DNA of 64,000 bases from Anaeramoeba ignava BMAN (GCA_028826165.1 JAPDFW010000086.1:248001-312000), one strand, 5' to 3'. Positions 16,464-51,755 are shown, counted from the stretch's first letter. Made by a program: numbers and translations. Notes: generated from the letters alone by a model not told the origin.

Positions 16464-18741
16464 TTAAAAATTTGATTTTGAGTTTGATTGAAAATTTAAG
16501 TTGTTCCAAATTGTTTCTTGTTTGTGAATTTTGGAAGAAGCAAATAAGAATTGATAGAAATCAAGAGATTTTAATCCAAAAATCTCTTCTTTATTAACCA
16601 AAATAACAGGATCTTTTGCAAATTGTGAAGTTGTTTCCAAATAATCTTGATGAGTGAAATAAAAATAATAATGATTTTTAGGAAGAATTAATGTTGATTT
16701 TCGAATTTTTTGGATTTCTTTGTGTGTTAAATGTTTCTCTTCATTTTCTTTTTGTTTTTGGTAAAGTTGCTTGATTTTTGCTTTTTGTTTTTTTTGTTCA
16801 GATTCAATTTCATTCCATTTTGGAATTGAACAATTCATTCCACTTAATTCAGAATAGTATTGTAAAATTGATGTGTTTGTTTGATTTTCGAAATCTCGAT
16901 CTTGGAATAAACTATCCACTTTTGAAAAATTTTCATTATAAATTTGAGTGGAAACTTGAATGAAAAATAATTCTTTTTCTTTTTTCTCGTTTTCTGATAA
17001 ACAAACAAAATCAATACGAGAATGTCCTTCAAAACAAACAATAAAATCTCCAACTTCCATTTTTTTTAATGGATTATCCTTATCTTGATAGATAATATTG
17101 CGAATCTTAATGTTGAAAGTGAAAGGATTTCTTTGCTTTCCTTGAAGACTCATATGGTTTAATTCAATTTTAGAACCTAAACTTCTTCGAAATATGTTCA
17201 AAACAACTAATTCAAAAGCTCTCAATTCATCTCCACTTTGGAAAAGAAATCGAAACAATGAAATTTGGGGTTTTTCAAAAGCTTCAAAAAACGCTTCTCG
17301 GATATATTTTGTTATTGGAACTAACTTCAAATTAGATTCAAAATAGGAAGTTGGTTGAATTTGTTGGTTGGAATTTGTTTTTTTCTCTTTCTTTTCATCA
17401 TTCTCTTCTTCAATTAATATTTCTTCAAATAATTCAGCTACTTCCCAAAAATCGGGTATAAAATCGGGATTTTCATTCAAACAAACCATTGTTGGAAATT
17501 CAATTTCTTGTCTCATACGATTTGGATCCCAAAGTTCTTGAATTTTTTCCAAAATAAATTCTATTCTTTTTTGATAATGTGAAATACAATTTTTTTGGGA
17601 TTGAATTAAAAATTTTCTTGTATCTCCTGAAAAAGTATTCAAATCATCATAAGTTTGTGAAATTATATAAAGCATTCTTGGTGATTTGTTTGTTAAATCT
17701 TCAAATTTTTCAATGGTTTGATCTTGAGGAAGTTTGTTTTCTTTTTGTTTCCATTTTGAAAGTATTTCAAATTCTTCTTGATTGTAAAAATATGATTTAA
17801 AACCTGATGTAATCAAATCAATATCCCGAATTGTGTTTCTATATTCAAAACTTGGACTTGTTGCTACAATAATTAATCCACTTTGAATTTCGCGAACTGT
17901 TTTAAAAAAATCCAAAATATGTTTTTGATTTTGATTTTGATTTGTTTCTCTAAAAAGATCATTGTAATTATCAAGCGCAATCAAAATTCTGAACTCATTC
18001 GTTTTCAATTTAATTAATTTTTGTAAAAATATTTTACATAATCCAACTTTTTTTTGTTCATCTTGTAAAGGATCATCTTCAAACCAAAATTTTTTATCAA
18101 AATTAAATTTGCATTTTTGAAACAATGATTCCCCATAATTTTGAAAAAAATATTCCATAATTTCTGAAGCAACATCATGACTTTCCTTTTTTAAAAAATT
18201 TTGTAAATTATTGAGATAGAAAACAACCCATTTTTGTTTTTTAGAAAATGAATTTGAATTTGAATTTGGTTGATTTGGAATTTGATCTTTTTGATTAATT
18301 TTCGGATCTTGAAGAAAAGGCTAAAAAAAATGGATGTAATTTTGTTTTAGATTTATTTTAATTTAAAATATTTTTGAGTTTTTTGAAAATTAATATTTAT
18401 TTCTTTCTTACATTAAATTGATAAAAATAAGCTGCTAAATGATAAAGAGAATAAGATTTTCCTGATCCATTTACTCCATGAAATACTCTAATTCCTGTTA
18501 TTCCTTCTTCAATTTTCTTCATAAAAATTTGATTTTGTTTTCTAATCAAGATTGGAGTTAAATTCCCATATTTTAACGAACCCATTTCTGAAGGTGAATC
18601 TATGAAAATATTAACAGGAATACCAGTGATTTTATTACAATTCTTTTTTTTTCTATGTTCTTCAATTCGGATTTTTGATAATTCTTCTTCAATTTGATTT
18701 CTATTCAAGTAATTTTCTGATTTTTCTTTTTTTGAATTCAT
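16464..18741 (-). CDS. P-loop NTPase + PD-(D/E)XK nuclease-like protein (Crinkler/RHS-type architecture)
   Basis: Exon 1 18741-18412, intron 18411-18321 (GTAAG...TTTAG), exon 2 18320-16464 in frame. Walker A GVNGSGKS, Walker B-like ILIALDNYND, C-terminal AFELVV...HSRIDFV...LFFIQVS. Confidence 0.7.
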
Positions 18742-19019: not shown

Positions 19020-20575
19020 TAAATTAATATAAAATTATTCTCAATCATTTAATAACATTTAAAAGGAAATTGAAATATTTTAATAAAGATAAAAATTTAA
19101 TTTTAATAACTTTTAATAAGTGTTAATTTAGAATTAATTCAAATCAAATTTAAATAAAATTTTCATTTATTAAATTAATATTTTTAATTATTTATTAATT
19201 CAATTTTAATTATAATAAAATATATTAAAATTGAAATATTTTAATAAAGATAAAAATTTAATTTTAATAAGTTTTAATAATTATTTAATTTAGAATTATT
19301 TCAAGTCAAATTCAAATCAAATTTTCATTTATTAAAATAATATTTTTGATTATTTATTAATTCAATTTTAATTATAATAAAATATATTAAAATTAAAATA
19401 TTTTAATAAAGATAAAAATTGAATTTTAATAAGTTTTAATAATTATTTAATTTAGAATTAATTCAAATCAAATTTAAATCAAATTTTCATTTATTAAATT
19501 AATATAAAATTATTCTCAATAATTTAATAACATTTAAAAGAAAATTAAAATATTTTAATAAAGATAAAAATTGAATTTTAATAAGTTTTAATAATTATTT
19601 AATTTAGAATTAATTTAAATAAAATTCAAATAAAATTTTCATTTATTAAATTAATATTTTTGATTATTTATTAATCCAATTTTAATTATAATAAAATATA
19701 TTAAAATTAAAATATTTTAATAAAGATAAAAATTGAATTTTAATAACTTTTAATAATTATTTAATTTAGAATTATTTCAAATCAAATTCAAATCAAATTT
19801 TCATTTATTAAATTAATATTTTTAATTATTTATTAATCCAATTTTAATTATAATAAAATATATTAAAATTAAAATATTTTAATAAAGATAAAAATTTAAT
19901 TTTAATAAATTTTAATAATTATTTAATTTAGAATTAATTCAAATCAAATTCAAATAAAATTTTCATTTATTAAATTAATATTTTTAATTATTTATTAATT
20001 CAATTTTAATTATAATAAAATATATTAAAAATTGAAATATTTTAATAAAGATAAAAATTTAATTTTAATAAGTTTTAATAATTATTTAATTTAGAATTAT
20101 TTCAAGTCAAATTCAAATCAAATTTTCATTTATTAAAATAATATTTTTGATTATTTATTAATCCAATTTTAATTATAATAAAAATATATTAAAATTGAAA
20201 TATTTTAATAAAGATATATATTTAATTTTAATAATTTTTAATAATTATTTAATTTAGAATTAATTTAAATAAAATTCAAATCAAATTTCCATTTATTAAA
20301 ATAATATTTTTGATTATTTATTAATTCAATTTTAATTATAATAAAATATATTAAAATTGAAATATTTTAATAAAGATAAAAATTTAATTTTAATAAGTTT
20401 TAATAATTATTTAATTTAAAATTAATTCAAATAAAATTCAAATCAAATTTTCATTTATTAAAATAATATTTTTGATTATTTATTAATTCAATTTTAATTA
20501 TAATAAAATATATTAAAATTGAAATATTTTAATAAAGATAAAAATTTAATTTTAATAAGTTTTAATAAGTGTTAA
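19020..20575. repeat. ~162-bp AT-rich tandem array (about 10 units) downstream of BTB-TLDc gene 1
   Basis: AATAAAGAT marker recurs at ~19082, 19243, 19405, 19557, 19721, 19881, 20044, 20207, 20369 and 20531. Confidence 0.85.
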
Positions 20576-20819: not shown

Positions 20820-22300
20820 TTAAATGAAATAAGTTTCAAGTTCATCAACAACCCATTGATTAGGAGAACCAGCTAAATAACTTTTAGATTCATCTGTTCC
20901 AAAAGTAATTCCTTTAGGTAAATTGTAACAATGGCCAAAATCTGTCCAACCATGTTCCAATTGAGAATTGATTGCAATATCAGCTTGGCCATATCCTCCA
21001 AAATTTGAACCATTTTCTAAACCATACCAAAGAGCATATTTCTCTTTTCCTTTTTAATTCCAAATTTCTCTGGGTTTCGATCTCCTTTATCATTTCTTAA
21101 TGAAAAAATAAATGCATTTGAATCAATAATCCATCCATAATCATTAGCATTACTCGACCATTTTGATTTATCAGTTGTCCATCCAACTTGAGTAAAACCT
21201 CCAAAAATAAAATTATCTTTTGTTTTGATAATAACTAATGTTTTTCCTTTATCATCAACTGCTTTATGCCAATTTTGAGAATTAAATCCATCTTTTTTTG
21301 CTGAATATCCTTTTTTCATTTTAGAAAAGAATTCATCATCATTTATCCATTCTTTTAATTTCTTGAAATGTTCAGTTTCATTAAGGATGGATGATTGGAA
21401 TTTAATTTTGTCTCTTGATTTGAAAATTAATGAATTTTCTTCTTCAATAAATTGTTTTAATTTTTTTTGATTTTTTTGATTTTTTTCAAGTTTTTGGAAT
21501 TCAATTAATTTTTGTGAAATTTGATTTGGAATTAAATCTTTTTTCAAAGTATCTTTAAGTTCTTTTTTTGAAAAATCAATAAATCTGATTTTATCAATAA
21601 TATTTAAAATTTGAATTTGTAATTTTTCTTTTTCATTTTTATCAAGTTTTTGAGTTTTCTTTTCTTGATTAATATTTGATTTATGTTTTCCCCATTTTAT
21701 TATTGTTTGGAAAAGTTCAAATTCATTTGTTAGGATTTCATCATTTGATAAAATTAAATTTAAATGATTTTCTTCAAGTTCAAGAAAAAATAAAGTTTTG
21801 ATAAATTCATCAAAATTATCTAAAATAAATTTATAAGAAGAATCTATTAATTGATTGAAGTTCATTGTTTCAGATAATTTAAGAATATCAACAATAGTTT
21901 CAAATTGTAAATTATTTTTAATAAAATTTGAAGAAATTTCAATTAATTCATCAATTAAATATTTTGATGAAAAAAATAAAATTTCAACAACATTTTCTAA
22001 ATTAATTTCAATTTTTCCTGAATAAAAATAATTCAAAATTGGAGATAGAATCGAACTTGAAACATCTTGAAGAATTAATTTATTTTCTTGATATTCTTTC
22101 ATTTTAGATTTAAAAAGAGATTTAAAATAATGACTTCTTGATGAAAGAATTGATTTATGAGTTTTAAATGAAGTTTTATCTTGTTCACAAATTATTTCAA
22201 AATCAAAATAACTTTCTTCTTCTTTTTCATTTTGATTTTGATTTTTAAATAAATTTTTTAAATCATTTGAAAGTTTTTCTAAATTTGAATAAGTTTCCAT
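20820..22300 (-). CDS. BTB-BACK-TLDc protein (one frameshift near 21050, possibly a homopolymer sequencing error)
   Basis: BTB (FKTHKSILSSRSHYF), BACK-like helices, TLDc (GKTLVIIKTKDNFIFGGFT). The TLDc C-terminus ...YLAGSPNQWVVDELETYFI* continues in another frame to 20820. Confidence 0.8.
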
Positions 22301-22334: not shown

Positions 22335-22790
22335 AAAAAATGAAAAATGAAAATTATTTTGATTTTAATTTTAATTTCAAATTTTTTTTATTTTATACAT
22401 TTTATTAATATTTATTTATTTAAATTAATATAAAATTATTCTCAATCATTAAATAAAACTAATAAAATATTTTAATTAATTTATTTCAAAAATGGAATAA
22501 AGAATATTAAATATTTAATTTCAAATTAATTTTATTTTATACATTTTATTAATATTTATTTATTTAAAATAATATAAAATTATTCTCAATCATTAAATAA
22601 AACTAATAAAATATTTTAATTAATTTATTTCAAAAATGGAATAAAGAATATTAAATAATTAATTTCAAATTAATTTTATTTTATATATTTTATTAATATT
22701 TCTTTGTTTAAATTAATATAAAATTATTCCCAAAAATTTAATAACATTTAAAAGGAAATTGAAATATTTTAATAAAGATAAAAATTTAAA
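22335..22790. repeat. Non-coding block with ~157-bp internal repeats, duplicated at ~31255-31710
   Basis: Shared CAAAAATGGAATAAAGAATATTAAAT and ATTCCCAAAAAATTTAATA...AAAAGGAAATTGAAAT motifs in the same orientation at both sites. Confidence 0.75.
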
Positions 22791-23140
22791 TCTAAAACAA
22801 TAAATTATTATTTTAAACATAAAATTAAATATTAAATTAAATCTATTCTCTTTTTTTTTTTTTAATTTATGATTGACGCATCTTGGGAATTATTTGGAAA
22901 GAAAATCAAAACAAAACTTGAAAGAAAGAGGAATTTTTATTGATTTGAAAAAGAAAAAGAAAAAGTAAAATTCCTAAAGCTTCTGGAATTGAAGTAAGAA
23001 ATTTGATTGAAATCCAATCAATATGGATTTCGAAAGAAAATCAATGAAATTGGAAAATTGGAAATGAATTCTTTGCTTGTGATTTTTCCTAATATCATTT
23101 CTTGTGAAATCTGTTTCATTTGGGACTTTTGCTTTCCAGT

Positions 23141-26100
23141 TCAATCAGACTAAAAAAATGAAACAAAATTCATTGTAAATAAATTAATTAGTAAACAAGA
23201 AATATTCAAAATTTTGTTCAAATTTAATTATTTGCAACGTATTTATTAAATAATAAATATTATTTTTTATAATTTAAATTTAATTTTGACTTTGATAAAT
23301 ATTTTTAGATTGAATGATTTACAAACTTTTTATTAAATAATAAATATTATTTTAATTTTTAATTTAAATTAAATTTGATTTTAATAAATATTTTTTTGGA
23401 TTTAATTATTTACAACTATTTATTAAATAATAAATATTATTTTTTTAATTTAATTTCATTTTCATTTTGATAAACATTTTTGGATTTAATCATTTACATC
23501 TAATTATTAAATAATAAATATTATTTTTATAATTTAAATTAATTTTGATTTTGATAAACATTTTTAGATTTAATTATTTACAAACTATTTATTAAATAAT
23601 AAATATTATTTTTATTTGTTAATTTAAATTAAATTTGATTTTTATAAATATTTTTGGATTAAATTATTTACTCCCTAATTATTAAATAATAAATATTATT
23701 TTTAATTTAAATTAATTTTGATTTTGATAAATATTTTTGGATTAAATTATTTACAACCTATTTATTAAATAATAAATATTATTTTTATTTTTAATTTAAA
23801 TTAAATTTTGATTTTTATAAATATTTTTGGATTTAATTTACAATCTATTTATTAAATAATAAATATTATTTTTATAATTTAAATTAATTTTAATTTTGAT
23901 AAATATTTTTAGATTTGATTATTTACTCCCTATTTATTAAAAAAATAAATATTATTTATTAATTTAAATTAAATTTGATTTTGATAAATATTTTTGGATT
24001 AAATTATTTACAATCTATTTATTAAATAATAAATATTATTTTTATAATTTAAATTGACTTTGATAAATATTTTTAGATTTGATTATTTACAAGCTATTTA
24101 TTAATTAATAAATATTATTTTTATAATTTAAATTAATTTTGATTTTAATAAATATTTTTAGATTTGATTATTTACAAGCTATTTATTAAATAATAAATAT
24201 TATTTTTATAATTTAAATTAATTTTGATTTTAATAAATATTTTTGGATTTAATTATTTACAAGCTATTTATTAAATAATAAATATTATTTTTATAATTTA
24301 AATTAAATTTGATTTTAATAAATATTTTTGGATTTGATTATTTACAGCCTATTTATTAAATAATAAATATTATTTTTATAATTTAAATTAAATTTGATTT
24401 TAATAAATATTTTTGGATTTGATTATTTACAAGCTATTTATTAATTAATAAATATTATTTTTATAATTTAAATTAAATTTGATTTTAATAAATATTTTTG
24501 GATTTAATTATTTACAGCCTATTTATTAAATAATAAATATTATTTTTATTTGTTAATTTAAATTAATTTTGATTTTAATAAATATTTTTGGATTTAATTA
24601 TTTACAATCTATTTATTAAATAATAAATATTATTTTAATTTTTAATTTAAATTAAATTTGATTTTGATAAATATTTTTGGATTAAATTATTTACAAGCTA
24701 TTTATTAAATTATAAATATTATTTTAATTGTTAATTTAAATTAATTTTGATTTTAATAAATATTTTTGGATTTAATTATTTACAAGCTATTTATTAAATA
24801 ATAAATATTATTTTTATAATTTAAATTAATTTTGATTTTAATAAATATTTTTGGATTTAATTATTTACAATCTATTTATTAAATAATAAATAATATTTTT
24901 TATTTTTTAATTTAAATTAATTTTGATTTTAATAAATATTTTTGGATTTAATTATTTACAACCTATTTATTAAATAATAAATATTATTTTTATTTGTTAA
25001 TTTAAATTAATTTTGATTTTTAATAAATATTTTTAGATTTGATTATTTACTCTCTATTTATTAAATAATAAATATTATTTTTAATTGAAATTAATTTTGA
25101 TTTTAATAAATATTTTTGGATTAAATTATTTACAAACTGTTTATTAAATAATAAATATTATTTTTATTTGTTAATTTAAATTGATTTTAATAAATATTTT
25201 TGGATTTAATTATTTACAATCTATTTATTAAATAATAAATATTATTTTTTTTAATTTAAAATTAATTTTGATTTTGATAAATATTTTTGGATTTAATTAT
25301 TTACAAACTATTTATTAAATAATAAATAATATTTTTATTTGTTAATTTAAATTAAATTTGATTTTTAATAAATATTTTTGGATTTGATTATTTACAGCCT
25401 ATTTATTAAATAATAAATATTATTTTAATTTATAATTTAAATTAATTTTGATTTTAATAAATATTTTTGGATTTAATTATTTACTCCCCTAATTATTAAA
25501 TAATAAATATTATTTTTAATTTAAATTAATTTTTGATTTTAATAAATATTTTTGGATTTAATTATTTACTTCCTATTTATTAAATAATAAATATTATTTT
25601 TTTATTTTTTAATTTGAAATTAATTTTGATTTTGATAAATATTTTTGGATTTAATTATTTACAAACTATTTATTAAATAATAAATAATATTTTTATTTTT
25701 AATTTAAATTAATTTTGATTTTAATAAATATTTTTGGATTTAATTATTTACTCCCTATTTATTAAATAATAAATAATATTTTTATTTTTAATTTAAATTA
25801 ATTTTGATTTTAATAAATATTTTTGGATTTGATTATTTACAGCCTATTTATTAAATAATAAATAATATTTTAATTTATAATTTAAATTAATTTTGATTTT
25901 AATAAATATTTTTGGATTAAATTATTTACTCTCTATTTATTAAATAATAAATATTATTTTTATTTGTTAATTTAAATTAATTTTGATTTTGATAAATATT
26001 TTTGGATTTAATTATTTACTTCCTATTTATTAAATAATAAATATTATTTTTTTAATTTAAATTAATTTTGATTTTAATAAATATTTTTGGATTTAATTAT

Positions 26101-29100
26101 TTACTTCCTATTTATTAATTAATAAATATTATTTTTTAATTGAAATTAATTTTGATTTTAATAAATATTTTTGGATTTAATTATTTACAAACTATTTATT
26201 AAATAATAAATAATATTTTTATTTGTTAATTTAAATTGATTTTAATAAATATTTTTGGATTTAATTATTTACAAACTATTTATTAAATAATAAATATTAT
26301 TTTTAATTTAAATTAATTTTTGATTTTAATAAATATTTTTGGATTTAATTATTTACAACCTATTTATTAAATAATAAATAATATTTTTATTTGTTAATTT
26401 AAATTGATTTTAATAAATATTTTTGGATTTAATTATTTACAGCCTATTTATTAAATAATAAATATTATTTTTATTTTTAATTTAAATTAATTTTGATTTT
26501 AATAAATATTTTTGGATTTAATTATTTACAGCCTATTTATTAAATAATAAATAATATTTTTTTTAATTTAAATTAATTTTGATTTTAATAAATATTTTTG
26601 GATTTAATTATTTACAAACTATTTATTAAATAATAAATATTATTTTTTATTTTTTAATTTAAATTAAATTTGATTTTGATAAATATTTTTGGATTTAATT
26701 ATTTACAAACTATTTATTAAATAATAAATATTATTTTTTATTTTTTAATTTAAATTAATTTTGATTTTTAATAAATATTTTTGGATTTGATTATTTACTT
26801 CCTATTTATTAAATAATAAATATTATTTTTAATTTAAATTAATTTTGATTTTAATAAATATTTTTGGATTTGATTATTTACAATCTATTTATTAAATAAT
26901 AAATATTATTTTTAATTTTTAATTTAAATTAATTTTGATTTTAATAAATATTTTTGGATTTAATTATTTACAAACTATTTATTAAACAATAAATATTATT
27001 TTAATTTTTAATTTAAATTAATTTTGATTTTAATAAATATTTTTGGATTTAATTATTTACTTCCTATTTATTAAATAATAAATATTATTTTTTATTTTTT
27101 AATTTAAATTAATTTTGATTTTGATAAATATTTTTGGATTTAATTATTTACTTCCTATTTATTAAATAATAAATATTATTTTTATTTTTAATTTAAATTA
27201 ATTTTGATTTTAATAAATATTTTTGGATTTAATTATTTACAATCTATTTATTAAATAATAAATATTATTTTAATTTTTAATTTGAAATTAATTTTTGATT
27301 TTGATAAATATTTTTGGATTTAATTATTTACAATCTATTTATTAAATAATAAATATTATTTTTTTTAATTTAAATTAATTTTGATTTTGATAAATATTTT
27401 TGGATTTAATTATTTACTCTCTATTTATTAAATAATAAATATTATTTTATAATTTTTAATTTAAATTAATTTTAATTTTAATAAACATTTTTGGATTTGA
27501 TTATTTACAAACTATTTATTAAATAATAAATATTTTTGTTTTTAATTTAAATTAATTTTGATTTTAATAAATATTTTTGGATTTAATTATTTACTCTCTA
27601 TTTATTAAATAATAAATATTAATTTTTATTTTTAATTTAAATTAATTTTGATTTTGATAAATATTTTTGGATTTAATTATTTACTTCCTATTTATTAAAT
27701 AATAAATATTATTTTTATTTTTAATTTAAATTAATTTTGATTTTGATAAATATTTTTGGATTTAATTATTTACAATCTATTTATTAAATAATAAATATTA
27801 TTTTAATTTTTAATTTAAAATTAATTTTGATTTTAATAAATATTTTTGAATTTAATTATTTACAGCCTAATTATTAAATAATAAATATTATTTTTATTTT
27901 TAATTTGAAATTAATTTTGATTTTGATAAATATTTTTGGATTTAATTATTTACAATCTATTTATTAATTAATAAATATTATTTTTTTTAATTTAAATTAA
28001 TTTTGATTTTGATAAATATTTTTGAATTAAATTATTTACAAGCTATTTATTAAATAATAAATTTTATTTTTATAATTTAAATTAATTTTGATTTTGATAA
28101 ATATTTTTGGATTTAATTATTTACAATCTATTTATTAATTAATAAATATTATTTTTTTAATTTAAATTAAATTTGATTTTTAATAAACATTTTTGGATTT
28201 AATTATTTACAAACTATTTATTAAATAATAAATATTATTATTTTTAATTTAAATTAATTTTGATTTTGATAAATATTTTTGGATTTAATTATTTACAATC
28301 TATTTATTAAATAATAAATTTTATTTTTAATTTTTAATTTAAATTAATTTTGATTTTGATAAATATTTTTGAATTAAATTATTTACAAACTATTTATTAA
28401 ATAATAAATAATTTTTTTAATTTAAATTAAATTTGATTTTTGATAAATATTTTTGGATTTAATTATTTACAATCTATTTATTAAATAATAAATAATTTTT
28501 AATTTTTAATTTAAATTAAATTTGATTTTGATAAATATTTTTGGATTTAATTATTTACAAGCTATTTATTAAATAATAAATTTTATTTTTAATTTAAATT
28601 AATTTTGATTTTAATAAATATTTTTGGATTTAATTATTTACAAACTATTTATTAAATAATAAATTTTATTTTTAATTTTTAATTTAAATTAAATTTGATT
28701 TTGATAAATATTTTTGGATTTAATTATTTACTCCCTAATTATTAAATAATAAATATTATTTTTAATTTAAATTAATTTTTGATTTTGATAAATATTTTTG
28801 GATTTAATTATTTACAAACTATTTATTAAATAATAAATTTTATTTTTAATTTTTATAATTTAAATTAATTTTGATTTTGATAAATATTTTTGGATTTAAT
28901 TATTTACAATCTATTTATTAAATAATAAATATTATTTTTAATTTAAATTAATTTTGATTTTAATAAATATTTTTGGATTTAATTATTTACAAGCTATTTA
29001 TTAAATAATAAATTTTATTTTTAATTTAAATTAATTTTGATTTTAATAAATATTTTTGGATTTAATTATTTACAAGCTATTTATTAAATAATAAATTTTA

Positions 29101-31016
29101 TTTTTAATTTAAATTAATTTTGATTTTAATAAATATTTTTGGATTTAATTATTTACAATCTATTTATTAAATAATAAATATTATTTTTAATTTAAATTAA
29201 TTTTGATTTTGATAAATATTTTTGGATTTAATTATTTACAAGCTATTTATTAAATAATAAATATTATTTTTATAATTTTTTAATTTAAATTCAATGAATT
29301 GCGAACACAAATTTGATATATTTTTGTGTATTTTTTATCTCAAGAAAAATATTATTTTGTTGAAACATATTTGATCATGTATTCTCTTTCAAAATTTGTT
29401 TTATTTTTTGAAGAAAAGCATTTTAATGAGGACGTTTTGATTTTAATTATTTATATATGTATAATAATATCAATATATCAGAAAAAGGTTGAGAAATTTC
29501 CAGACATTTCCAAAAAGTGTTTTGATCTGAACCTATTAATTTTCTGATAATAATTGCCTTGAGAGTGAATTTTAAACAATTCAAAGAAAAAATTTTAAAA
29601 TGAATTTTATAAAACTAAAATTTCAAATATATGAAATCGATCAGAATCTTATCAAAATTAATTCTATTATTTCTATATCATTTCTCAAGATAATACTAAT
29701 ATCTTTTTTTTTATTAGAAATGGAATTTTTTAAATTATTCTAATCAATTTTTCTGATTTTTTATTTTAAATGATGAATATTCTATTTATTTTTGTTCTGT
29801 AATATATTTTCTTTTTTGTCAATTTGGATGTTTTATTCATAATTCCAAAGAGAAATAAGAAAACAAAGATCGAAACAAATCATAAAAAATATGTATAAAA
29901 GTTCCTTAGAATCTTCAACTTTATAAATTTTTTGAAAGAGAAAAAAATTTTTTTTTGAAATTAACTCAAAATTGTCCCTAGTTTGACTTTATAATATTAT
30001 TCTATTTAATTATTTACTTTCTATTTATTCAATAAAAAATTTTTTTTTTCAATTTTATAAATTTTAGAGTTCAATTATTTACCAGCTATTTTTTAAATAA
30101 TTTATTTGTTTTTCAATTTGAATATATTTTTGATTTTATAAATATTTTTTTTCCAATTTAATTATTTACTGCCTATTTATTAAATAATAAATAATTTTTT
30201 TTAATTTGATTTTATAAATATTATTTTTTTTCAATTTAATTATTTACTGCCTATTTATTAAATAATAAATATGAATTTTGGTTTAAATTAATTTGATTTT
30301 ATAAATATTATTTAGAGATTTAATTATTTACAAACTGGTTATTAAAATAATAAATATTAATTTGTTTAATTTAAATTCATTTTGATTTGATGTATATTTT
30401 TGGATTTAATTATTTACAATCTATTTATTAAATAATAAAAATTTTTATTCAAATGATTATTTTGAATTTGATAAATATTTGAGATTTTCATTATTTACAA
30501 TCTATTTGTAATAATTAATTTTAGGTTTCATATGAAAAATTTTATTAAGAACGGAAAATTATATGGAAAATCCAAATTGTATATTTGGAAATCAAAAAAT
30601 ATAAATAGAAAATAAAATGAAGAAATTCAAAAATAATTTATGAAAAAAAATGGTTATAAATAAGTACCTTTTTGGAGATTTGATTTATTTTTCGGTTTTG
30701 GTGATTTGGATTTTGATTTGGATTTTGATTTGGATTTTGATTTTGATTTGGATTTTGATTTGGATTTTGATTTTGATTTGGATTTGGATTTGGATTTAGA
30801 TCGTTCTTGTTTTTGTCTTTCTTGTGTCTTTCGATTAAATCTTGAATCTTTTCTTGTATTTCAGTATTTTGTTCTTGTATTTTCCTTATCTCTTCTTGTA
30901 TTTGATCTTGATTTGTATCTTTATGATGATGTTATTGAGAATTTTAATTTAAAATTGAATTTGAAATTGAATTTTAAATTTGATTTTGAATTCATTTATC
31001 TTGAAGGCTTACTCAT
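23141..31016 (-). CDS. Predicted membrane protein gene with about 76 single-codon microexons (coiled-coil/NQ-rich N-terminus plus two hydrophobic segments)
   Basis: Exon 1 ATGA 31016-31013, intron GTAAG...TAAAG 31012-30919, exon 2 30918-30668 (85 codons total, ends phase 0 at AAG|GTACTT). Then 7 microexons at 30501-30018, 69 microexons at 29242-23323, and a candidate last exon TTTTTTTAG|TCTGATTGA from 23149. Hand-derived; no transcript evidence. Confidence 0.65.
23225..29290 (-). repeat. Tandem array of 69 intron+microexon units (79-93 bp period) plus one degenerate terminal unit
   Basis: Minus-strand consensus GTAAATAATTAAATCCAAAAATATTTATTAAAATCAAAATTAATTTAAATTAAAAATAATATTTATTATTTAATAAATAG followed by a variable triplet. 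Confidence 0.92.
30005..30510 (-). repeat. Seven more diverged intron+microexon units
   Basis: AG|NNN|GTAAAT at plus-strand positions 30499, 30418, 30332, 30248, 30170, 30083 and 30018, giving ATT ATT TTT GCA GCA CTG AAA. Confidence 0.85.
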
Positions 31017-31674
31017 TTTTCTTTTTGTAATTTTTTTTATTAGAAAAGGAAAAAAAAAGGGAAAATTAGTTTTGTTTTTTGAATCGATAAAATAAATATT
31101 TTAAAAGTATAATGAATAAGTAATTAATAAGTATTTTATTTTTAAATAATTTATAATTTTTGTTTTTATTATTATTTATTATTAAATTTATATTTATTTT
31201 TTTAAAATCAAGAAAAATATTTACTTCGATAATTAAAAATTTGGAAAAAAAAAATGAAAAATGAAAAATGAAAAATATTTTGATTTAATTTTAATTTTTT
31301 TTATTTTATATATTTCATCAAATTTTCATTATTTAAAATAATATAAAATTATTCTCAATAATTTAATAAAATTAATAAAATATTTTAATTAATTTATTTA
31401 AAAAATGGAATAAAGAATAATTAATAATTAATTTCAAATTAATTTTATTTTATATATTTTATTAATATTTCTTTGTTTAAAATAATATAAAAATTATTCT
31501 CAATCATTAAATAAAACTAATAAAATATTTTAATTAATTTATTTCAAAAATGGAATAAAGAATATTAAATAATTAATTTCAAATTAATTTTATTTTTATA
31601 TATTTTATTAATATTTCTTTTGTTTAAATTAATATAAAATTATTCCCAAAAATTTAATAGTATTTAAAAGGAAA

Positions 31675-32385
31675 TTGAAATATTTTAATAAAGATAAAAA
31701 TTTAATTTTAATAAGTTTTAATAATTATTTAATTTAAAATTAATTCAAATCAAATTCAAATAAAATTTTCATTTATTAAAATAATATTTTTAATTATTTA
31801 TTAATCCAATTTTAATTATAATAAAATATATTAAAAATTAAAATATTTTTAATAAAGATAAAAATTTAATTTTAATAACTTTTAATAATTATTTAATTTA
31901 GAATTATTTCAAATCAAATTTAAATAAAATTTTCATTTATTAAATTAATATTTTTAATTATTTATTATTCAATTTTAATTATAATAAAATGTATTAAAAT
32001 TAAAATATTTTAATAAAGATAAAAATTTAATTTTAATAAGTTTTAATAATTATTTAATTTAGATTTATTTCAAATCAAATTCAAATCAAATTTTCATTTA
32101 TTAAAATAATATTTTTGATTATTTATTATTCCAATTTTAATTATAATAAAATATATTAAAAATTGAAATATTTTAATAAAGATAAAAATTTAATTTTAAT
32201 AACTTTTTAATAATTATTTAATTTAAAATCAATTCAAATCAAATTCAAATAAAATTTTCATTTATTAAATTAATATTTTTAATTATTTATTATTCCAATT
32301 TTAATTATAATAAAATATATTAAAATTGAAATATTTTAATAAAGATAAAAATTTAATTTTAATAAGTTTTAATAAGTGTTAATAA
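31675..32385. repeat. ~162-bp tandem array (about 5 units) downstream of BTB-TLDc gene 2
   Basis: Same unit as 19020-20575. Confidence 0.85.
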
Positions 32386-34486: not shown

Positions 34487-36031
34487 TTAATTATCGGAAA
34501 ATTCACTTTCAAGACATTTCTTAACGAATTTATGAGCATCAATTAAACCGAAAATATCCACGAACTCTTCTTCGCGATGAATATTACAAGCAGCAACAGA
34601 AATAGTAGCAGAATTAATAAAAGTAGACAAAACACGCGCATCATTAGAACCAGTAGAAAAATAAGAAGAATAACCGAAAGAAGATCCAATATTTGAGAGA
34701 AATAGATCCAAAGAATAAGGCCCGAATCCACTTTCGTAGCAGCGAATAACTCTTCTTGAACCACCACCATCAAGAATCAAAGCATAAGGAAGTTCGAAAA
34801 GTTTATAAGCATGGGAACTCTCGATAAATGCCTTTGCGCCAAGTAAATGTTTCTCTTCACCGCAAGTTAAAAGCCAGTTAAAATTCATTTTGTGATTGAG
34901 TAAAAGATCCAAAATTACAAAAACTCCGCATTTATCATCTGCTCCAATGATTCCTTGTCCTGAAATGATATTCCCAGTTCTTTTCACTGTGTCAATGTAG
35001 ATCACATCCTTCATTTGCTGGACAGTATCGATATGTGCGCATAATAAGGGTCGATTTGGGAGATTGAGTGAAAAAATGTTGCCGAAACTATCAGTTTCAA
35101 AAAGAATATCATTAGCTGTAAGAATATTCTTGCAAATGTAATCGCGAAGTCTTTTTTCATACCCAGTTGGCGAAGCAATTCTCATGAGATCCAACAGAAG
35201 ATCTGTGTTTAGTGATGGTTCTGCATCCGGAACCACATTCGGAGTTTCTTCATAAAAGGAAGTGTAGTGATATCTTGATCGATCCAAAAGTTCCAACATT
35301 CTCATAGTAATAACATAAACTTTTGATAAATCATTTAGTGAAATCAATGATTCTTTTTCTTGCATTTGCGAAATTGGGAAGCACAAGGGCAGAACTTCAC
35401 AATCATCGTCAATTTTCAAATTTACTAAACCAAATCGATTGTATTGCTCGTGCGAAATGAATTGGAACGGATTTGGATCGTATTCTTTTTCGGAAATTGT
35501 TTTAATCATGTTGTAAATTCTTTTGTGTGTATTTTCGTAAGAAATTGTTATTGTGACTGGTCCTTGATCCACATTTACGGTTTCTGAATAACCATGAATT
35601 GAGATGCAATATTTTTCTTTGAAATCGGCTTTTTTGAGAATTTCGAAAATGAGTTCATTTGCCTTTTTTGGATCTTTCATTTGTGAAATTCCTAAATAGA
35701 CAACTTGGATGTTTTTTGGATTGAATGCTTTAACAATTTCCATCATAATTGCTAATGAAGCTTGATTTTTCAAATTAACTCCTTGAATAGTTTGTTTTTC
35801 TTCATTTTTGGATGTTTTTGAGTTGATTTCTGATTCATCAAAATTATCAATAGCTGAGTGAATTATAACAATAGCTTTTGGTTCTTTTACTGATTTATCT
35901 CCAATAAAATTATTGGATTCATCAAATGAAAAAGAATCTAAAAATTGGTTTAAATTTGATTCAAGAAATTGAGGAATTGCGTTTTGGTTGAGTTCAAGAA
36001 ATTTAAATAAATTTTTTTCGATTGATTCCAT
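34487..36031 (-). CDS. Zinc peptidase of the M20/M28/M42 clan with an unassigned N-terminal region
   Basis: C-terminal half has SPTGYEK, LLCAHIDTV, GADDKCG, GEE, ILD and IHREEE metal-binding motifs. Intronless. Confidence 0.8.
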   Translation of the reverse strand: MESIEKNLFKFLELNQNAIPQFLESNLNQFLDSFSFDESNNFIGDKSVKEPKAIVIIHSAIDNFDESEINSKTSKNEEKQTIQGVNLKNQASLAIMMEIVKAFNPKNIQVVYLGISQMKDPKKANELIFEILKKADFKEKYCISIHGYSETVNVDQGPVTITISYENTHKRIYNMIKTISEKEYDPNPFQFISHEQYNRFGLVNLKIDDDCEVLPLCFPISQMQEKESLISLNDLSKVYVITMRMLELLDRSRYHYTSFYEETPNVVPDAEPSLNTDLLLDLMRIASPTGYEKRLRDYICKNILTANDILFETDSFGNIFSLNLPNRPLLCAHIDTVQQMKDVIYIDTVKRTGNIISGQGIIGADDKCGVFVILDLLLNHKMNFNWLLTCGEEKHLLGAKAFIESSHAYKLFELPYALILDGGGSRRVIRCYESGFGPYSLDLFLSNIGSSFGYSSYFSTGSNDARVLSTFINSATISVAACNIHREEEFVDIFGLIDAHKFVKKCLESEFSDN

Positions 36032-36192: not shown

Positions 36193-39100
36193 TTATTTTT
36201 TCTCAATTTCCATATCTTGATTATCATTATTTTTTTCATCATCTTTTTTTTCATCATCTTCTTTTTTATCATCTTCTTTTTTTTCATCATCTTTTTTATC
36301 TCCATCTTTTTTTAAAGATTCAAGAGCAGATTTAATACGATCATCATTTGGATTAACACCTGGTAAACTTAATAAAACAGAATCAATTAAATCTTGATTT
36401 TGAAGAACATTTCCAAGATCAAATGCAGAATCGAATTGATTATCTTGATTTTGATTTGATTCTGTTTGTTTTTCTTTATCTTTTTCTTCATTTGATTTAT
36501 CTTGTGATTCGTTTATTGATCTTTCTAAAATTAATTTCATTTGTTCATCTTCATTTAATTCAGATATATTAACTTGATCTTGTTTTTCTTCTTGCATTTG
36601 TTGTTGTTCTTGTTCTTGATTTTGATTTTCATCATCATTTGTTTCTGAATTATCATCTCCACTAAATTCTGCAAGTGACATTTCGATTGCTCTTCTAGTT
36701 TCTTCATCATATTCCGAATCGTCTTAATTTTATAAATAATTTTATAAATAATTTTATAAATAATTTTATATTTAATTTTATAAATAATTTTATAAATAAT
36801 TTTATAAATAATTTAATAAATAATTTTATAATTAATTTTATAATTAATTTTATAATTAATTTTATAAATAATTTTATAAATAATTTTATAAATAATTTTA
36901 TTAATAATTTTATATTTAATTTTATAAATAATTTTATAAATAATTTTATAATTAATTTTATAAATAATTTTATAAATAATTTTATATTTAATTTTGTATT
37001 TAATTTTTGTATTTAAATTTTATAATTAATTTTATAATTAATTTTATATTTAAATTTTATATTTAATTTAATAAATAATTTTATAAATAATTTTATATTT
37101 AATTTTATAAAATAATTATTATATTTAATTTTATAAATAATTTTATAAATAATTTTATAAATAATTTTATAAATAATTTTATATTTAATTTTATAAATAA
37201 TATTATATTTAATTTTTATATTTAATTTTATAAATAATTTTATATTTAATTTTATATTTAAATTTTATAATTAATTTTATATTTAATTTTATAAATAATT
37301 TTTATATTTAATTTTATATTTAATTTTATAAATAATTTTTATATTTAATTTTATAAATAATTTTATAAATAATTTTATAAATAAATTTATATATAATTTT
37401 ATATTTAATTTTATATATAATTTTATAATTAATTTTATAAATAATTTTATAAATAATTTTATAAATAATTTTATATTTAATTTTATAAATAATTTTATAA
37501 ATAATTTTATATTTAATTTTATAAATAATTTTATAAATAATTTTATATTTAATTTTATATTTAATTTTATAAATAATTTTATAAATAATTTTATAAATAA
37601 TTTTATAAATAATTTTATAAATAATTTTATAAATAATTTTATAAATAATTTTATAAATAATTTTATAAATAATTTTATAAATAATTTTATAAATAATTTT
37701 ATAAATAATTTTATAAATAATTTTATAAATAATTTTATATATAATTTTATAATTAATTTTATAAATAATTTTATAAATAATTTTATATTTAATTTTATAA
37801 ATAATTTTATAAATAATTTTATAAATAATTTTATAAATAATTTTATAAATAATTTTATAAATAATTTTATATATAATTTTATAATTAATTTTATAAATAA
37901 TTTTATATTTAATTTTATAAATAATTTTATATTTAATTTTATAAATAATTTTATAAATAATTTTATAAATAATTTTATAAATAATTTTATAAATAATTTT
38001 ATAAATAATTTTATAAATAATTTTATAAATAATTTTATAAATAATTTTATAAATAATTTTATAAATAATTTTATATTTAATTTTATAAATAATTTTATAT
38101 TTAATTTAATAAATAATTTAATAAATAATTTAATAAATAATTTTATAATTAATTTTATAATTAATTTTATAAATAATTTTATAAATAATTTTATAAATAA
38201 TTTTATAAATAATTTTATATATAATTTTATAAATAATTTTATAAATAATTTTATAAATAATTTTATAAATAATTTTATATATAATTTTATAATTAATTTT
38301 ATAAATAATTTTATAAATAATTTTATAAATAATTTTATAAATAATTTTATATATAATTTTATAATTAATTTTATAAATAATTTTATATTTAATTTTATAA
38401 ATAATTTTATAAATAATTTTATAAATAATTTTATAAATAATTTTATATATAATTTTATAATTAATTTTATAAATAATTTTATATTTAATTTTATAAATAA
38501 TTTTATAAATAATTTTATAAATAATTTTTATATATAATTTTATATTTAATTTTATAAATAATTTTATAAATAATTTTATAATTAATTTTATAAATAATTT
38601 AATAAATAATTTTATAAATAATTTTATATTTAATTTTATAAATAATTTTATAAATAATTTTATATATAATTTTATAAATAATTTTATATTTAATTTTATA
38701 AATAATTTTATAAATAATTTTATAATTAATTTTATAATTAATTTTATATTTAATTTTATAAATAATTTAATAAATAATTTTATAAATAATTTTATATTTA
38801 ATTTTATAAATAATTTTATATTTAATTTAATAAATAATTTTATATTTAATTTTATAAATAATTTTATAAATAATTTTATAAATAATTTTATAAATAATTT
38901 TATAAATAATTTTATAAATAATTTTATATATAATTTTATAATTAATTTTATAAATAATTTTATATTTAATTTTATAAATAATTTTATAAATAATTTTATA
39001 AATAATTTTATAAATAATTTTATAAATAATTTTATAAATAATTTTATAAATAATTTTATAAATAATTTTATAAATAATTTAAATAATTTTATAAATAATT

Positions 39101-41554
39101 TTATAAATAATTTTATAAATAATTTTATAAATAATTTTATATTTAATTTTATAAATAATTTTATAAATAATTTTATATTTAATTTTATAAATAATTTTAT
39201 AAATAATTTTTATAAATAATTTTATAAATAATTTTTATATATAATTTTATAATTAATTTTATAAATAATTTTATATTTAATTTTATAAATAATTTTTATA
39301 TTTAATTTTATAAATAATTTTATAAATAATTTTATAAATAATTTTATAAATAATTTTATAAATAATTTTATAAATAATTTTATAAATAATTTAATAAATA
39401 ATTTAATAAATAATTTTATAAATAATTTTATAATTAATTTTATAAATAATTTTATAATTAATTTTATAAATAATTTTATATTTAATTTTATACTTAATTT
39501 TATACTTAATTTTATATTTAATTTTTATAAATAATTTTATAAATAATTTTATATTTAATTTTTATATTTAATTTTATAATTAATTTTATAAATAATTTTA
39601 TATTTAATTTTATAAATAATTTTATAATTAATTTTATAAATAATTTAATAAATAATTTTATAAATAATTTTATAAATAATTTTATAAATAATTTTATAAA
39701 TAATTTTATATTTAATTTTATATTTAATTTTATATTTAATTTTATAATTAATTTTTATATTTAATTTTATAAATAATTTTATAAATAATTTTATAAATAA
39801 TTTTATAAATAATTTTATATTTAATTTTATAAATAATTTTATATTTAATTTTATAAATAATTTTATAAATAATTTTATATTTAATTTTATAAATAATTTT
39901 ATAAATAATTTTATATTTAATTTTATTAATAATTTTATAAATAATTTTATATTTAATTTTATATTTAATTTTATATTTAATTTTATAAATAATTTTTATA
40001 AATAATTTTATAAATAATTTTATAAATAATTTTATAAATAATTTTATAAATAATTTTATAAATAATTTTATAAATAATTTTATAAATAATTTTATAAATA
40101 ATTTTTATAATTAATTTTATATTTAATTTTATAAATAATTTAATAAATAATTTTATAAATAATTTTATATTTAATTTTATAAATAATTTTATTAATAATT
40201 TTATATTTAATTTTATATTTAATTTTATAATTAATTTTATAATTAATTTTATAAATAATTTTATAAATAATTTTATATTTAATTTTATTAATAATTTTAT
40301 ATTTAATTTTATATTTAATTTTATAATTAATTTTATAATTAATTTTATAAATAATTTTATAATTAATTTTATAAATAATTTTATAAATAATTTTATAAAT
40401 AATTTTATAAATAATTTAATAAATAATTTTATAATTAATTTTATAATTAATTTTATAAATAATTTTATAAATAATTTTATATTTAATTTTGTATTTAATT
40501 TTGTATTTAATTTTGTATTTAAATTTTATAAATAATTTTATAAATAATTTTATAAATAATTTTATATTTAAATTTTATAAATAATTTTATAATTAATTTT
40601 ATAAATAATTTTATATTTAATTTTATAAATAATTATATAATTAATTTAATAAATAATTTTATAAATAATTTTATAAATAATTTTATAAATAATTTTATAA
40701 ATAATTTTATAAATAATTTTATAATTAATTTTATATTTAAATTTTATATTTAAATTTATATTTAATTTATATTTAAATTTTATAAATAATTTTATATATA
40801 AATAAAAACCTTCCATTTCTTGAGGTTGCTCATTAGAATCAGAAGACTGAGGTTTTGGAGTAGATTGAGAATCATTTCTCCTAGCATTTTCCTCCAAAGA
40901 AAGCCTCAAAGCCAAAGCCAATTCAGGATCAATATTTGGATCTACACCAAAATCATTAGAAAAATCTGAAGGATTAGCATCACCAAGAATAAGGGAGCCC
41001 TGAATTTGGTCCGAGAGGATAACGCCCGAAATTGGGGGGATATGGACAATATGGCTGTTATCGTTCTTATTAACGGTTTCTATAAGAGCGTCTAATTTTT
41101 CACGGTTTGAATCAGTTTCTCCAAAATTAACGATATCTAAAGCAACATTATTTTTTTTAAGCATATTTCCGACACGGAGAAGATCTTCGGAACTTGCTTT
41201 AACGGGGCTGCCGACAAACATTATAATGCGTTGAGCTTGTTGCCTGTTCATTCGATGTTTAAGTGCAAGTTGTGCAATATAAAGGCTTGTCACGTGATCT
41301 GAATCTCCTGCAATTTGCACCTCGTGAAGAGACGCTAAAATCTTGCCAACATCGCTTGTAGGCGCGATTACTAGTTTCGGTTGTGATCCTCCCATTGATA
41401 ATACTCCAACTGTGTTCTCAAAATTGCTGTTCGTTTTTCTTCCTGTTATTATGTTGACTGAATCTAATTGTGCTTCAAATCTTGTCGGTGAAAAATCAGA
41501 ATTTCGCATGTATTCGCTATTGTCAATACATATTAATGTTCCTTCTAATACCAT
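36193..41554 (-). CDS. RPN10: 26S proteasome ubiquitin receptor Rpn10/PSMD4
   Basis: Exon 1 41554-40810 (vWA domain MVLEGTLICIDNSEYMRN, UIM DPELALALRLSLEE), intron 40809-36723, exon 2 36722-36193 (further UIMs, SVLLSLPGVNPND). Phases match (G|AC); 424 aa. Confidence 0.95.
36725..40800. repeat. 4-kb (TTTTATAAATAA)n 12-bp satellite forming the Rpn10 intron
   Basis: Directly visible, almost purely A/T. Confidence 0.95.
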
Positions 41555-45823: not shown

Positions 45824-47599
45824 ATGAATGATTGTTTATTTTTTGGTCAAAATGAAAATCAAAAACTTATCAAAAATGAACCAGAAAGAATAACAAATCC
45901 AATTCAATTTAAATTTGAAAATGAAAATGAAAATGAAAATGAAAATGAAAATGAAAAACAAATTAAACAAATTTCATCAAGCCATTTTTCAACAATTTTC
46001 CTTTTTAAAAATGGAAAAGCAATAGAATATTTAAGTGAAAAAGATCCAAATCAAAATCCTTCAAAAATCCAAATTGAAAATATTCAAAAAGTAACTGTTG
46101 GTTTTGCAAATGAAGCTATTTTAACAAAAGAAGGAAATGTATTTGCCAAAGGATATGATATTAATCCAAAAAATCCAAAAGAATTTATCAATATTTCATC
46201 ATTAATTAAAGATAAAAAAGATAGAATAATTGAAGATATTGTTTCTGGATGGAATTCAATTTACTTATTAACTTCAAATCAAAATGCTTATGGAATTGGT
46301 TCAAATGGTTATGTTCAACTTGGAGTTGATTCTAAAAAACTTTCAAAAACAGAAAAACCAATTTTAATGATGAAAAATGTTTCTAAAATATTTTCAGGAA
46401 ACTCTTCAAATCATGTTTTTCTTTTAAATTCAAATCAAGAATTATTTGGATGCGGTAATAATTCTTATGCTCAACTTGGATTAGGATATACAAGAAAAGA
46501 AGCAAAAATCGATAAACTAACCAAAATTAAAATTATTACAAAAGGCAAAATAATTGATATTCAATCTGGATATGCTCATTCAATAATGTTGATTGAAAAT
46601 GAAAATGAAAATCCAAAAAGAAAACTTTATTCATGTGGAAGATATTTTTTTAATGGACTTGGAAAAAATGAAGATACAAGAATATTTACTGAAATCAAAT
46701 CATCTTTATTTAAAAATGATAATGATAATATTCTTGAATTTTCTGTTGGATGTTTTCAGAATTTGATTCTAACTTCAAATGGGAAATTAATTGGTTTTGG
46801 AGGAAATTTCTATGGAGAATTAGGAACTGGAGATACAAAACAACAAAAAATTCCAATTCAACTTGAACTTCCTGAATTAAGATTTAATGAAGATATTTCT
46901 AATTATCATATTTCTTGTGGATATTATAATTCATTTCTTTATTCTCCTTCTTTTTCCAATCTTGAAGAAGATTTGATAAAATTATTTAGAAGAAAAGAAT
47001 TTTGTGATATTTCATTTAAAACAGAAAATGGAGAAATAATTGAAGCTCATAAATTAATATTGAAATATAGATTAAATCAAAATCAAAATGAAAATCAAAA
47101 TGAAAAACTTCAAGAAATTATTTCAAAAAAATCAATTAAAGAATCAAATCAAATATTTGAAATGATTTATTCAAACAAAATAATAAATCCAAAATTATAT
47201 TCTGAAATTAAAGAAATTATAAATTCAAATGAAAAAATTGAAGAAACAATGAAAAGAATTTATTTAAATGAAAATGAAAAAGATTTTATAATTGAAAGAA
47301 AAGAAAAACAATATAAATTTCCTAAATTAATATTAATAATGAGAAGTGAATTATATCGAGGAATGTTTTTATCTGTAACAGAAGATAAATCTAATAAAGT
47401 TACAGATTATAGTGAATTAAGTAATAAATCATTCCAAATATTAGAATATTGGATTTATTCAAATCAAATTAAAAATGAAATTCAAATTACTCAAGAAATA
47501 ATTGAAGAATTAAAAACAGGAATTGATTATTTTCAATTAAATCAAACAAATCCAAATTTATTTGATTTATTAATTAGGAAATTTAATAATCAAAATTAA
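45824..47599 (+). CDS. RCC1-repeat + BTB protein (tandem copy 1)
   Basis: RCC1 blades (GSNGYVQLG, GNNSYAQLGLG, GGNFYGELGTG), BTB (FCDISF..IEAHKLILKYR) and a second BTB-like segment. Confidence 0.9.
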   Translation: MNDCLFFGQNENQKLIKNEPERITNPIQFKFENENENENENENEKQIKQISSSHFSTIFLFKNGKAIEYLSEKDPNQNPSKIQIENIQKVTVGFANEAILTKEGNVFAKGYDINPKNPKEFINISSLIKDKKDRIIEDIVSGWNSIYLLTSNQNAYGIGSNGYVQLGVDSKKLSKTEKPILMMKNVSKIFSGNSSNHVFLLNSNQELFGCGNNSYAQLGLGYTRKEAKIDKLTKIKIITKGKIIDIQSGYAHSIMLIENENENPKRKLYSCGRYFFNGLGKNEDTRIFTEIKSSLFKNDNDNILEFSVGCFQNLILTSNGKLIGFGGNFYGELGTGDTKQQKIPIQLELPELRFNEDISNYHISCGYYNSFLYSPSFSNLEEDLIKLFRRKEFCDISFKTENGEIIEAHKLILKYRLNQNQNENQNEKLQEIISKKSIKESNQIFEMIYSNKIINPKLYSEIKEIINSNEKIEETMKRIYLNENEKDFIIERKEKQYKFPKLILIMRSELYRGMFLSVTEDKSNKVTDYSELSNKSFQILEYWIYSNQIKNEIQITQEIIEELKTGIDYFQLNQTNPNLFDLLIRKFNNQN

Positions 47600-47858
47600 A
47601 AATCAAAATCAAAATTAAAATTAAAATTAAAATTAAAATTAAAATTAAAAATTAAAATTAAAATCAAAATTAAAATCAATATCAATATAAATATCAATAT
47701 CAATATTAAAATTAAAATTAAAATTAAAATTAAAATTAAAATTAAAATTAAAATTAAAATTAAAATTAAAATTAAAATTAAAATCAAAATTAAAATTAAA
47801 ATTAAAATTAAAATTAAAATTAAAATTAAAATTAAAATTAAAATTAAAATTAAAATTC
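47595..47858. repeat. (AAAATT)n spacer; similar runs at 49745-49880 and 51655-51727
   Basis: Hexamer runs separate the RCC1-BTB copies. Confidence 0.9.
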
Positions 47859-47892
47859 CAAAATCATTTTTTTCATTTTTTACTTTTCAAAA

Positions 47893-49749: not shown

Positions 49750-49915
49750 AATTAAAATTAAAATTAAAATTAAAATTAAAATCAAAATCAAAAATTAAAA
49801 TTAAAATTAAAATTAAAATTAAAATTAAAATTAAAATTAAAATTAAAATTAAAATTAAAATTAAAATTAAAATTAAAATCCAAAATTTCATTTTTTCATT
49901 TTTTACTTTTCAAAA

Positions 49916-51661: not shown

Positions 51662-51755
51662 AATTAAAATTAAAATTAAAATTAAAATTAAAATTAAAAA
51701 TTAAAATTAAAATTAAAATTAAAATTCATTTTTTTCATTTTTTTCATTTTTAAAA

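Follow-up and report, generated by a model that had tools for sequence, protein, structure and literature searches.

In a 64,000-nt stretch of the genome of the anaerobic amoeba Anaeramoeba ignava BMAN (GCA_028826165.1 JAPDFW010000086.1:248001-312000; the window hereafter, with positions counted from its first base) we found 69 tandem minus-strand units spanning 29242 to 23323, each composed of a GT-AG intron-like spacer and then a triplet. On balance, the array is probably the 3' end of the coding sequence in a small gene of chimeric make-up, in which module copying and a selected codon order would have produced a tail of single-codon exons. If spliced as read, it would be an extreme of exon size and exon number, with about 76 consecutive one-codon exons encoding nearly half of a protein.

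The array and its host gene

The spacers of the main array, with donors running from 29239 to 23322, were 76-90 nt long (mean 84 nt, 6.9% GC), and each began with GTAAAT and ended with AG. A clean triplet was present in 66 of the 69 units. With unit 44 taken as GGA, the codons of units 1-66 were ATT (15), TTT (14), CTT (11), GCT (7), GAA (7), GGA (5), AGA (4), and GTT (3). The window sequence thus confirmed what the earlier note had described: 69 minus-strand exons using eight codons, one A/T-ending codon per residue, and no stops. The Leu codon was CTT, while the genome prefers TTA. All 11 Glu and Arg codons were central, as that note had also stated (units 19-49, 27687-25051). It had given the uncharged flanks as 18 and about 20 residues; the first did have 18 codons but the second only 17 clean ones, and the last three residues of its peptide are underlain by two 2-nt units and one unit with a weak AAG acceptor. 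Also present, but absent from that note, were the flanking exons and an older block of 7 units (30018-30501). The features of the gene, from 5' to 3', are as follows.

30919-31016, minus strand: ATG at 31016; the frame opens only with a 94-nt intron (GTAAGC..AAG) removed, and otherwise has a stop after six codons
30668-30918, minus strand: upstream exon, coiled-coil-like and then NQ/NP-rich, with a phase-0 end at a GT donor (30667)
30018-30501, minus strand: seven single-codon exons forming an older block (I I F A A L K); their diverged introns are 69-89% identical to the main unit
29243-30017, minus strand: intron of 775 nt in which about 715 nt of nearly unique DNA interrupts one unit
23323-29242, minus strand: main array, 69 putative single-codon exons and 68 near-identical 76-90-nt GT-AG introns
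27774-29242, minus strand: units 1-18, uncharged run of L, I, F, one G, and one A
25051-27687, minus strand: units 19-49, with all 7 Glu and 4 Arg codons and without Leu
25485-25488, minus strand: unit 44, 4 nt within a G run, a real frameshift or a homopolymer assembly error
23582-24962, minus strand: units 50-66, second uncharged run, 17 codons
23323-23499, minus strand: units 67-69, decayed array end, where two units have 2 nt and the other is a triplet behind an AAG acceptor
23150-23322, minus strand: final 173-nt intron; it has a T-rich acceptor, a branch-point-like TACTAAT at 23193, and a single dead unit with AC/GC ends, and C1 and C57 carry a homologous region
22900-23149, minus strand: final exon, encoding Ser-Asp-stop in phase 0 (23149-23141) and continuing as a 3'-UTR-like stretch

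Read literally, unit 44 shifts the frame and a stop follows soon after. All the off-size units of the main array, namely unit 44 (4 nt) and units 67 and 68 (2 nt each, at 23498-99 and 23414-15), were inside homopolymers, as were two 2-nt units of the related C57 array. One-base frameshifts were also present in a neighbouring BTB-TLDc gene and in a C1 kinase. The assembly (42,843,398 bases, 147 contigs) is a nanopore one, with polishing by Racon, Nanopolish, and Pilon, and because of the homopolymer settings and the similar frameshifts elsewhere, assembly error is a plausible source of the off-size units. The other 66 of the 69 units were 3 nt long, and both the upstream donor and the last exon fit phase 0. 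Rfam gave no matches in 22800-31200, and a known non-coding RNA was rejected as the identity of the array in that interval.

The unit family occurred at four loci, in the window and on C1, C57, and C137. At C1 and C57 the loci are BTB coiled-coil genes in which a phase-0 donor precedes three homologous single-codon exons that are un-cloned; the array follows, and after it a short last exon with a stop. The C137 array is downstream of a RING-kinase-like gene. The 3'-UTR-like stretch was found only in the window, C1, and C57, at about 75% identity. The host gene in the window appears to be a chimera of uncertain integrity, since its 5' region is similar to an NQ-rich BTB gene on C123. Its N-terminus is polar and has no signal peptide. 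The upstream exon (30668-30918) had no Pfam match, and a homology search with it gave one low-complexity match only. The older block used codons beyond the main set (GCA, CTG, and AAA), and the 775-nt intron also contains a possible alternative short last exon, with Gly-Gln-Phe-stop after a 40-nt intron.

Several other features of the window were recorded. Two AT-rich repeat families (about 163 and 144 nt) lie either side of the array gene, beside BTB-TLDc genes (19067-20568, 22370-22744, 31285-31659, and 31672-32375), and a related repeat flanks the C57 gene. A BTB-BACK-TLDc ORF (21017-22300) is cut short near 21050, where an A run holds an apparent frameshift of one base, with the TLDc part continuing in another frame. 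A 4-kb array of a 12-nt unit nearly without G or C (36725-40801) is apparently in an intron of an Rpn10-like (VWA) gene between 41554 and 36193. Four tandem RCC1-like/BTB ORFs with near-identical frameworks occupy 45824-53552. An intronless 514-aa ORF of higher GC with a sub-threshold peptidase M28 match (34487-36031) is a possible lateral transfer, and a 564-aa ORF (16464-18158) had no Pfam match.

Triplets as putative codons

Counted genome-wide, the acceptor-Nk-donor motif occurred 1427 times with k=3, 253 times with k=2, and 182 times with k=4. Exactly-3-nt AG..GT motifs were 6-8-fold enriched, an excess of about 1,200 in the genome. The 234 triplets of six array segments at the four loci used 23 codons for 17 amino acids with zero stops, and their GC by triplet position was 0.48/0.33/0.06, a gene-like gradient. 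The absence of stops is weak evidence when taken alone (P 0.01-0.05 by array types, 0.2-0.3 on distinct codons). The unit motif had no matches in metagenome contigs.

The spacers of the main array resembled the introns of the species in being GT-AG, 76-90 nt long, and 6.9% GC, where A. ignava introns have a mode of 76 nt and 8.14% GC (PMC11550330 Table S3A). The donor GTAAAT was invariant, and intron identity was 88-93% inside the main array and 71-78% to C1, C57, and C137. Exon diversity in the array units was 0.75/0.53/0.36 compared with 0.05 in introns, with triplet positions 7-15 times more variable than spacer positions. In a recent 9-unit duplicate on C137, 5 of 8 substitutions fell within the 27 exon bases, two of them as double changes; counted by events, 3 of 6 were in exon bases (P about 0.001).

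The related arrays showed rearrangements of their own. At C137:620,340-622,500, nine-unit blocks were duplicated three times, with near-identical introns and exchanged codons. The C137 array is interrupted by a 4.07-kb element of PIF/Harbinger-like appearance (C137:615,221-619,287), which has a transposase-like ORF, terminal inverted repeats that are imperfect, and an AAT duplication of 3 nt. About 1 kb of (ATT)n has expanded within one intron of the C1 array (C1:410,900-411,900), and a similar (TAAA)n run is present in the C137 array.

Four BTB-TLDc genes (C1:1,057,900-1,069,300 and C1:942,300-942,800) contain arrays of 7-28 three-base exons in a variable loop after GPxFG, and these arrays follow a phase-1 donor. 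The public gene models that we inspected for them skip the arrays or end before them. In these phase-1 arrays the A/T-only base was the middle one. Read across their junctions, the arrays gave Tyr/Asp-rich loops free of stops, flanked by the conserved GPxFG and DI motifs, while a frame-0 reading gave a false hydrophobic peptide. The wobble position thus appears to move with intron phase, a pattern difficult to account for if the triplets are not translated and one suggesting that they behave as codons.

Phase 0 gave a GC3 of 0 in the main array; the one other frame that stays open gave 0.43, and genes have 0.15. Frame +1 was stop-free in the first 43 units and frame +2 had 7 stops, and both frames were rejected, the former on its GC3 and the latter on its stops. 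From GC3, the phase-0 donor of the upstream exon, and the phase-0 paralogues, we read the main array as phase 0.

Codon order and the origin of the array

The earlier note had proposed that codon order is constrained at the protein level, as two transmembrane segments around an amphipathic loop, and had suggested a permutation test and a tandem-duplication null for the clustering of charged codons. The order tests were post hoc, with a pattern picked after being seen and with simple nulls. By shuffling, both flanks had at least 17 uncharged codons with P=1.4e-4, and Leu was missing from the middle with P=0.0035. Adjacent identical codons numbered 10 against 9.5 expected, and local conversion or block duplication, simulated to match composition and short-range identity, reproduced the uncharged flanks in about 0.3% of runs at most. 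Simple tandem duplication was rejected as the cause of the order. The introns showed weak local homogenisation (Mantel rho 0.14). Those of the middle were about as close to the 5' flank as the 5' flank was to itself, which is against the middle being a separate intron lineage, and the two uncharged flanks were not each other's nearest intron group, though both contain Leu.

The eight codons split into two single-step networks, NTT/GCT and GAA/GGA/AGA. The sorting into zones cuts across both networks, because GGA was found in the flanks but GAA and AGA never (P=0.018), and CTT was absent from the middle unlike its network neighbours (P=0.004). The hydrophobicity of the product may be partly built into the genetic code and this alphabet, since four of the eight codons are NTT. 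Mean hydropathy of the uncharged runs was 3.1, and their 19-residue sums, on a separate scale, were -4.7 and -4.0. A two-pass hairpin is expected to have two hydrophobic segments of about 18-20 residues, and runs of 18 and 17 were found. A membrane-anchored hairpin would be the simplest reading of two such runs round a charged middle. The claim of constrained order stood in so far as shuffling, simulated local duplication or conversion, and intron lineage failed to explain the order. The amphipathic loop was not supported, as the helical moment of the middle was not above shuffles (P=0.5 for the whole, 0.15 for the best window), and an amphipathic connecting helix was rejected on this result. 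The earlier note had also pointed to other arrays as a place where stop triplets might appear. None were present in the related arrays, but their decoded tails were Arg/Asn/Asp-rich, Lys/Asp/Pro-rich, and acidic peptides with no likeness to a hairpin. The hairpin is thus not conserved, because three related loci decode to unrelated polar peptides.

In the reading that we consider probable, each unit would be a minimal spliceosomal intron plus one phase-0 codon. Introns would be removed one after another by intron definition, each step leaving one codon, to give a product of about 160 residues (an 85-residue coiled-coil/NQ head, 7 and then 69 single-codon residues, and Ser-Asp-stop). The use of one codon per residue (log10 P = -12 under gene codon usage) and the intron variants that travel with GGA indicate the copying of whole intron and codon modules. 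This copying is visible in the array, and its route may have been unequal crossover. Codons may have been swapped between units by gene conversion through the identical flanks, and module copying together with such swapping would leave one codon per amino acid. Selection on the peptide would keep several codon types and sort two membrane-length runs round the charged middle. Against this reading, the assembled frame is broken by the off-size units, the start of the gene depends on an unusual intron with an AAG acceptor, the gene looks chimeric, and the paralogues have no hairpin.

The units could instead be real exons forming a combinatorial library, with each transcript taking a subset, the zones biasing composition, and no single full-length product mattering; the outcome would be a family of peptides, diversified much as in micro-exon genes. 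All units are frame-neutral with near-identical splice sites, as such a library would have, and the full decode of the TLDc arrays (7-28 residues) exceeds the 1-12-residue hypervariable loop of most annotated paralogues. However, the membrane-length runs of 18 and 17 fit full inclusion and the sequence carries no mark of alternative units, and we regard a library as unlikely. A neutral minisatellite, grown from one intron and microexon in a dead or irrelevant gene tail, would owe its zones to drift and homogenisation and its hydrophobicity to two founder codon lineages. The two single-step networks fit this, as do the sign of copying in the use of a single codon for each residue (P about 1e-12 given the codon usage of genes), the weak intron homogenisation (again rho 0.14), the off-size units, decayed ends and uncertain start, and the transposon that splits the related C137 array. 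It is nevertheless distinctly unlikely: the greater variability of triplets than of spacers (7-15 times) is unlike neutral drift, the wobble signature follows intron phase, matched simulations of local copying gave zones in about 0.3% or fewer runs, and the flanks have Leu in common without a common intron lineage.

The triplets might also be absent from the mRNA, through recursive-like stepwise removal or one-intron skipping, or be read in another phase. An acceptor and donor 3 nt apart come near to the geometry of a ratchet point, frame +1 is open through the first 43 units, and the phase-1 TLDc arrays demonstrate that a false hydrophobic frame-0 peptide can arise. However, skipping would put no selection on a length of exactly 3 nt, on sense codons, or on a wobble position that depends on phase, and another phase is opposed by the GC3 of frame +1 and the stops of frame +2. 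We consider this highly improbable. Beyond the probable reading of the array as a selected coding tail, a broader proposal is possible but doubtful, namely that A. ignava builds protein segments from a pool of introns and codons. Each codon would carry its own homology arms, residues would be gained, lost, and swapped as whole codons without frameshift or stop, and selection would have arrived at a functional two-pass anchor de novo through about 78 consecutive introns.

Comparison with known systems

Ratchet points of recursive splicing have a juxtaposed acceptor and donor, are removed stepwise, and leave no sequence in the mRNA, whereas here each step would leave one codon. Introner elements are many near-identical introns of recent origin inserted at scattered sites in existing genes, and the main-array introns are alike in number, near-identity, and recent origin. 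Introner insertion into a pre-existing ORF would keep normal synonymous use, and it was rejected because the host codons lack ordinary synonymous usage, with one codon per residue (log10 P = -12).

A literature search found no paper joining Anaeramoeba with microexons, and the intron note of the genome paper does not mention tiny exons (PMC11550330). The Schistosoma MEGs have mostly 15-bp symmetric exons, 10-20 per gene, with introns of 0.1-5 kb, a signal peptide, and hydrophobic products (bioRxiv 10.1101/2023.06.21.545858). They resemble the present locus in coding mostly on tiny symmetric exons, in being missed by annotation, and in their hydrophobic products. The present locus instead has 76 exons that are each only 3 nt long, separated by 84-nt introns that are clones of one another; it lacks a signal peptide and belongs to an unrelated lineage. 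Isoforms in the MEG family come from alternative splicing of central exons, which would be hypothetical here. Membership of the MEG family was rejected on the Metamonad genome, the polar N-terminus, and the 84-nt introns.

Microexons of 1-15 nt are known in plants (APC11, VPS55), animals, and fungi, where exons of 1-3 nt are spliced in and missed by annotation (PMC8831610). Those are single or paired in conserved genes, whereas the present locus has dozens one after another, their introns homogenised and their content hypervariable. In the Argiope MaSp2 spidroins, and in tenascin-X as cited there, introns are near-identical within a gene and differ between genes, a pattern linked to unequal crossover and conversion (PMC9779670). 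The introns here are likewise more alike within the gene than between genes (88-93% compared with 71-78%). However, spidroin exons are long and homogenised together with the introns, while each exon of the present array is a single codon, which varies more than any other part of the unit (exon diversity 0.36-0.75 compared with 0.05 in introns).

If spliced as read, the array would make the spliceosome cope dozens of times in succession with an acceptor and a donor separated by 3 nt, which would directly test sequential intron definition. It would further amount to mutagenesis by codon cassettes in nature, with paralogous tails diverging into unrelated peptides, giving a visible route to de novo protein sequence. 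No compared system has dozens of consecutive one-codon exons varying between cloned introns, and the locus adds length and protein-like order to micro-exon gene architecture.
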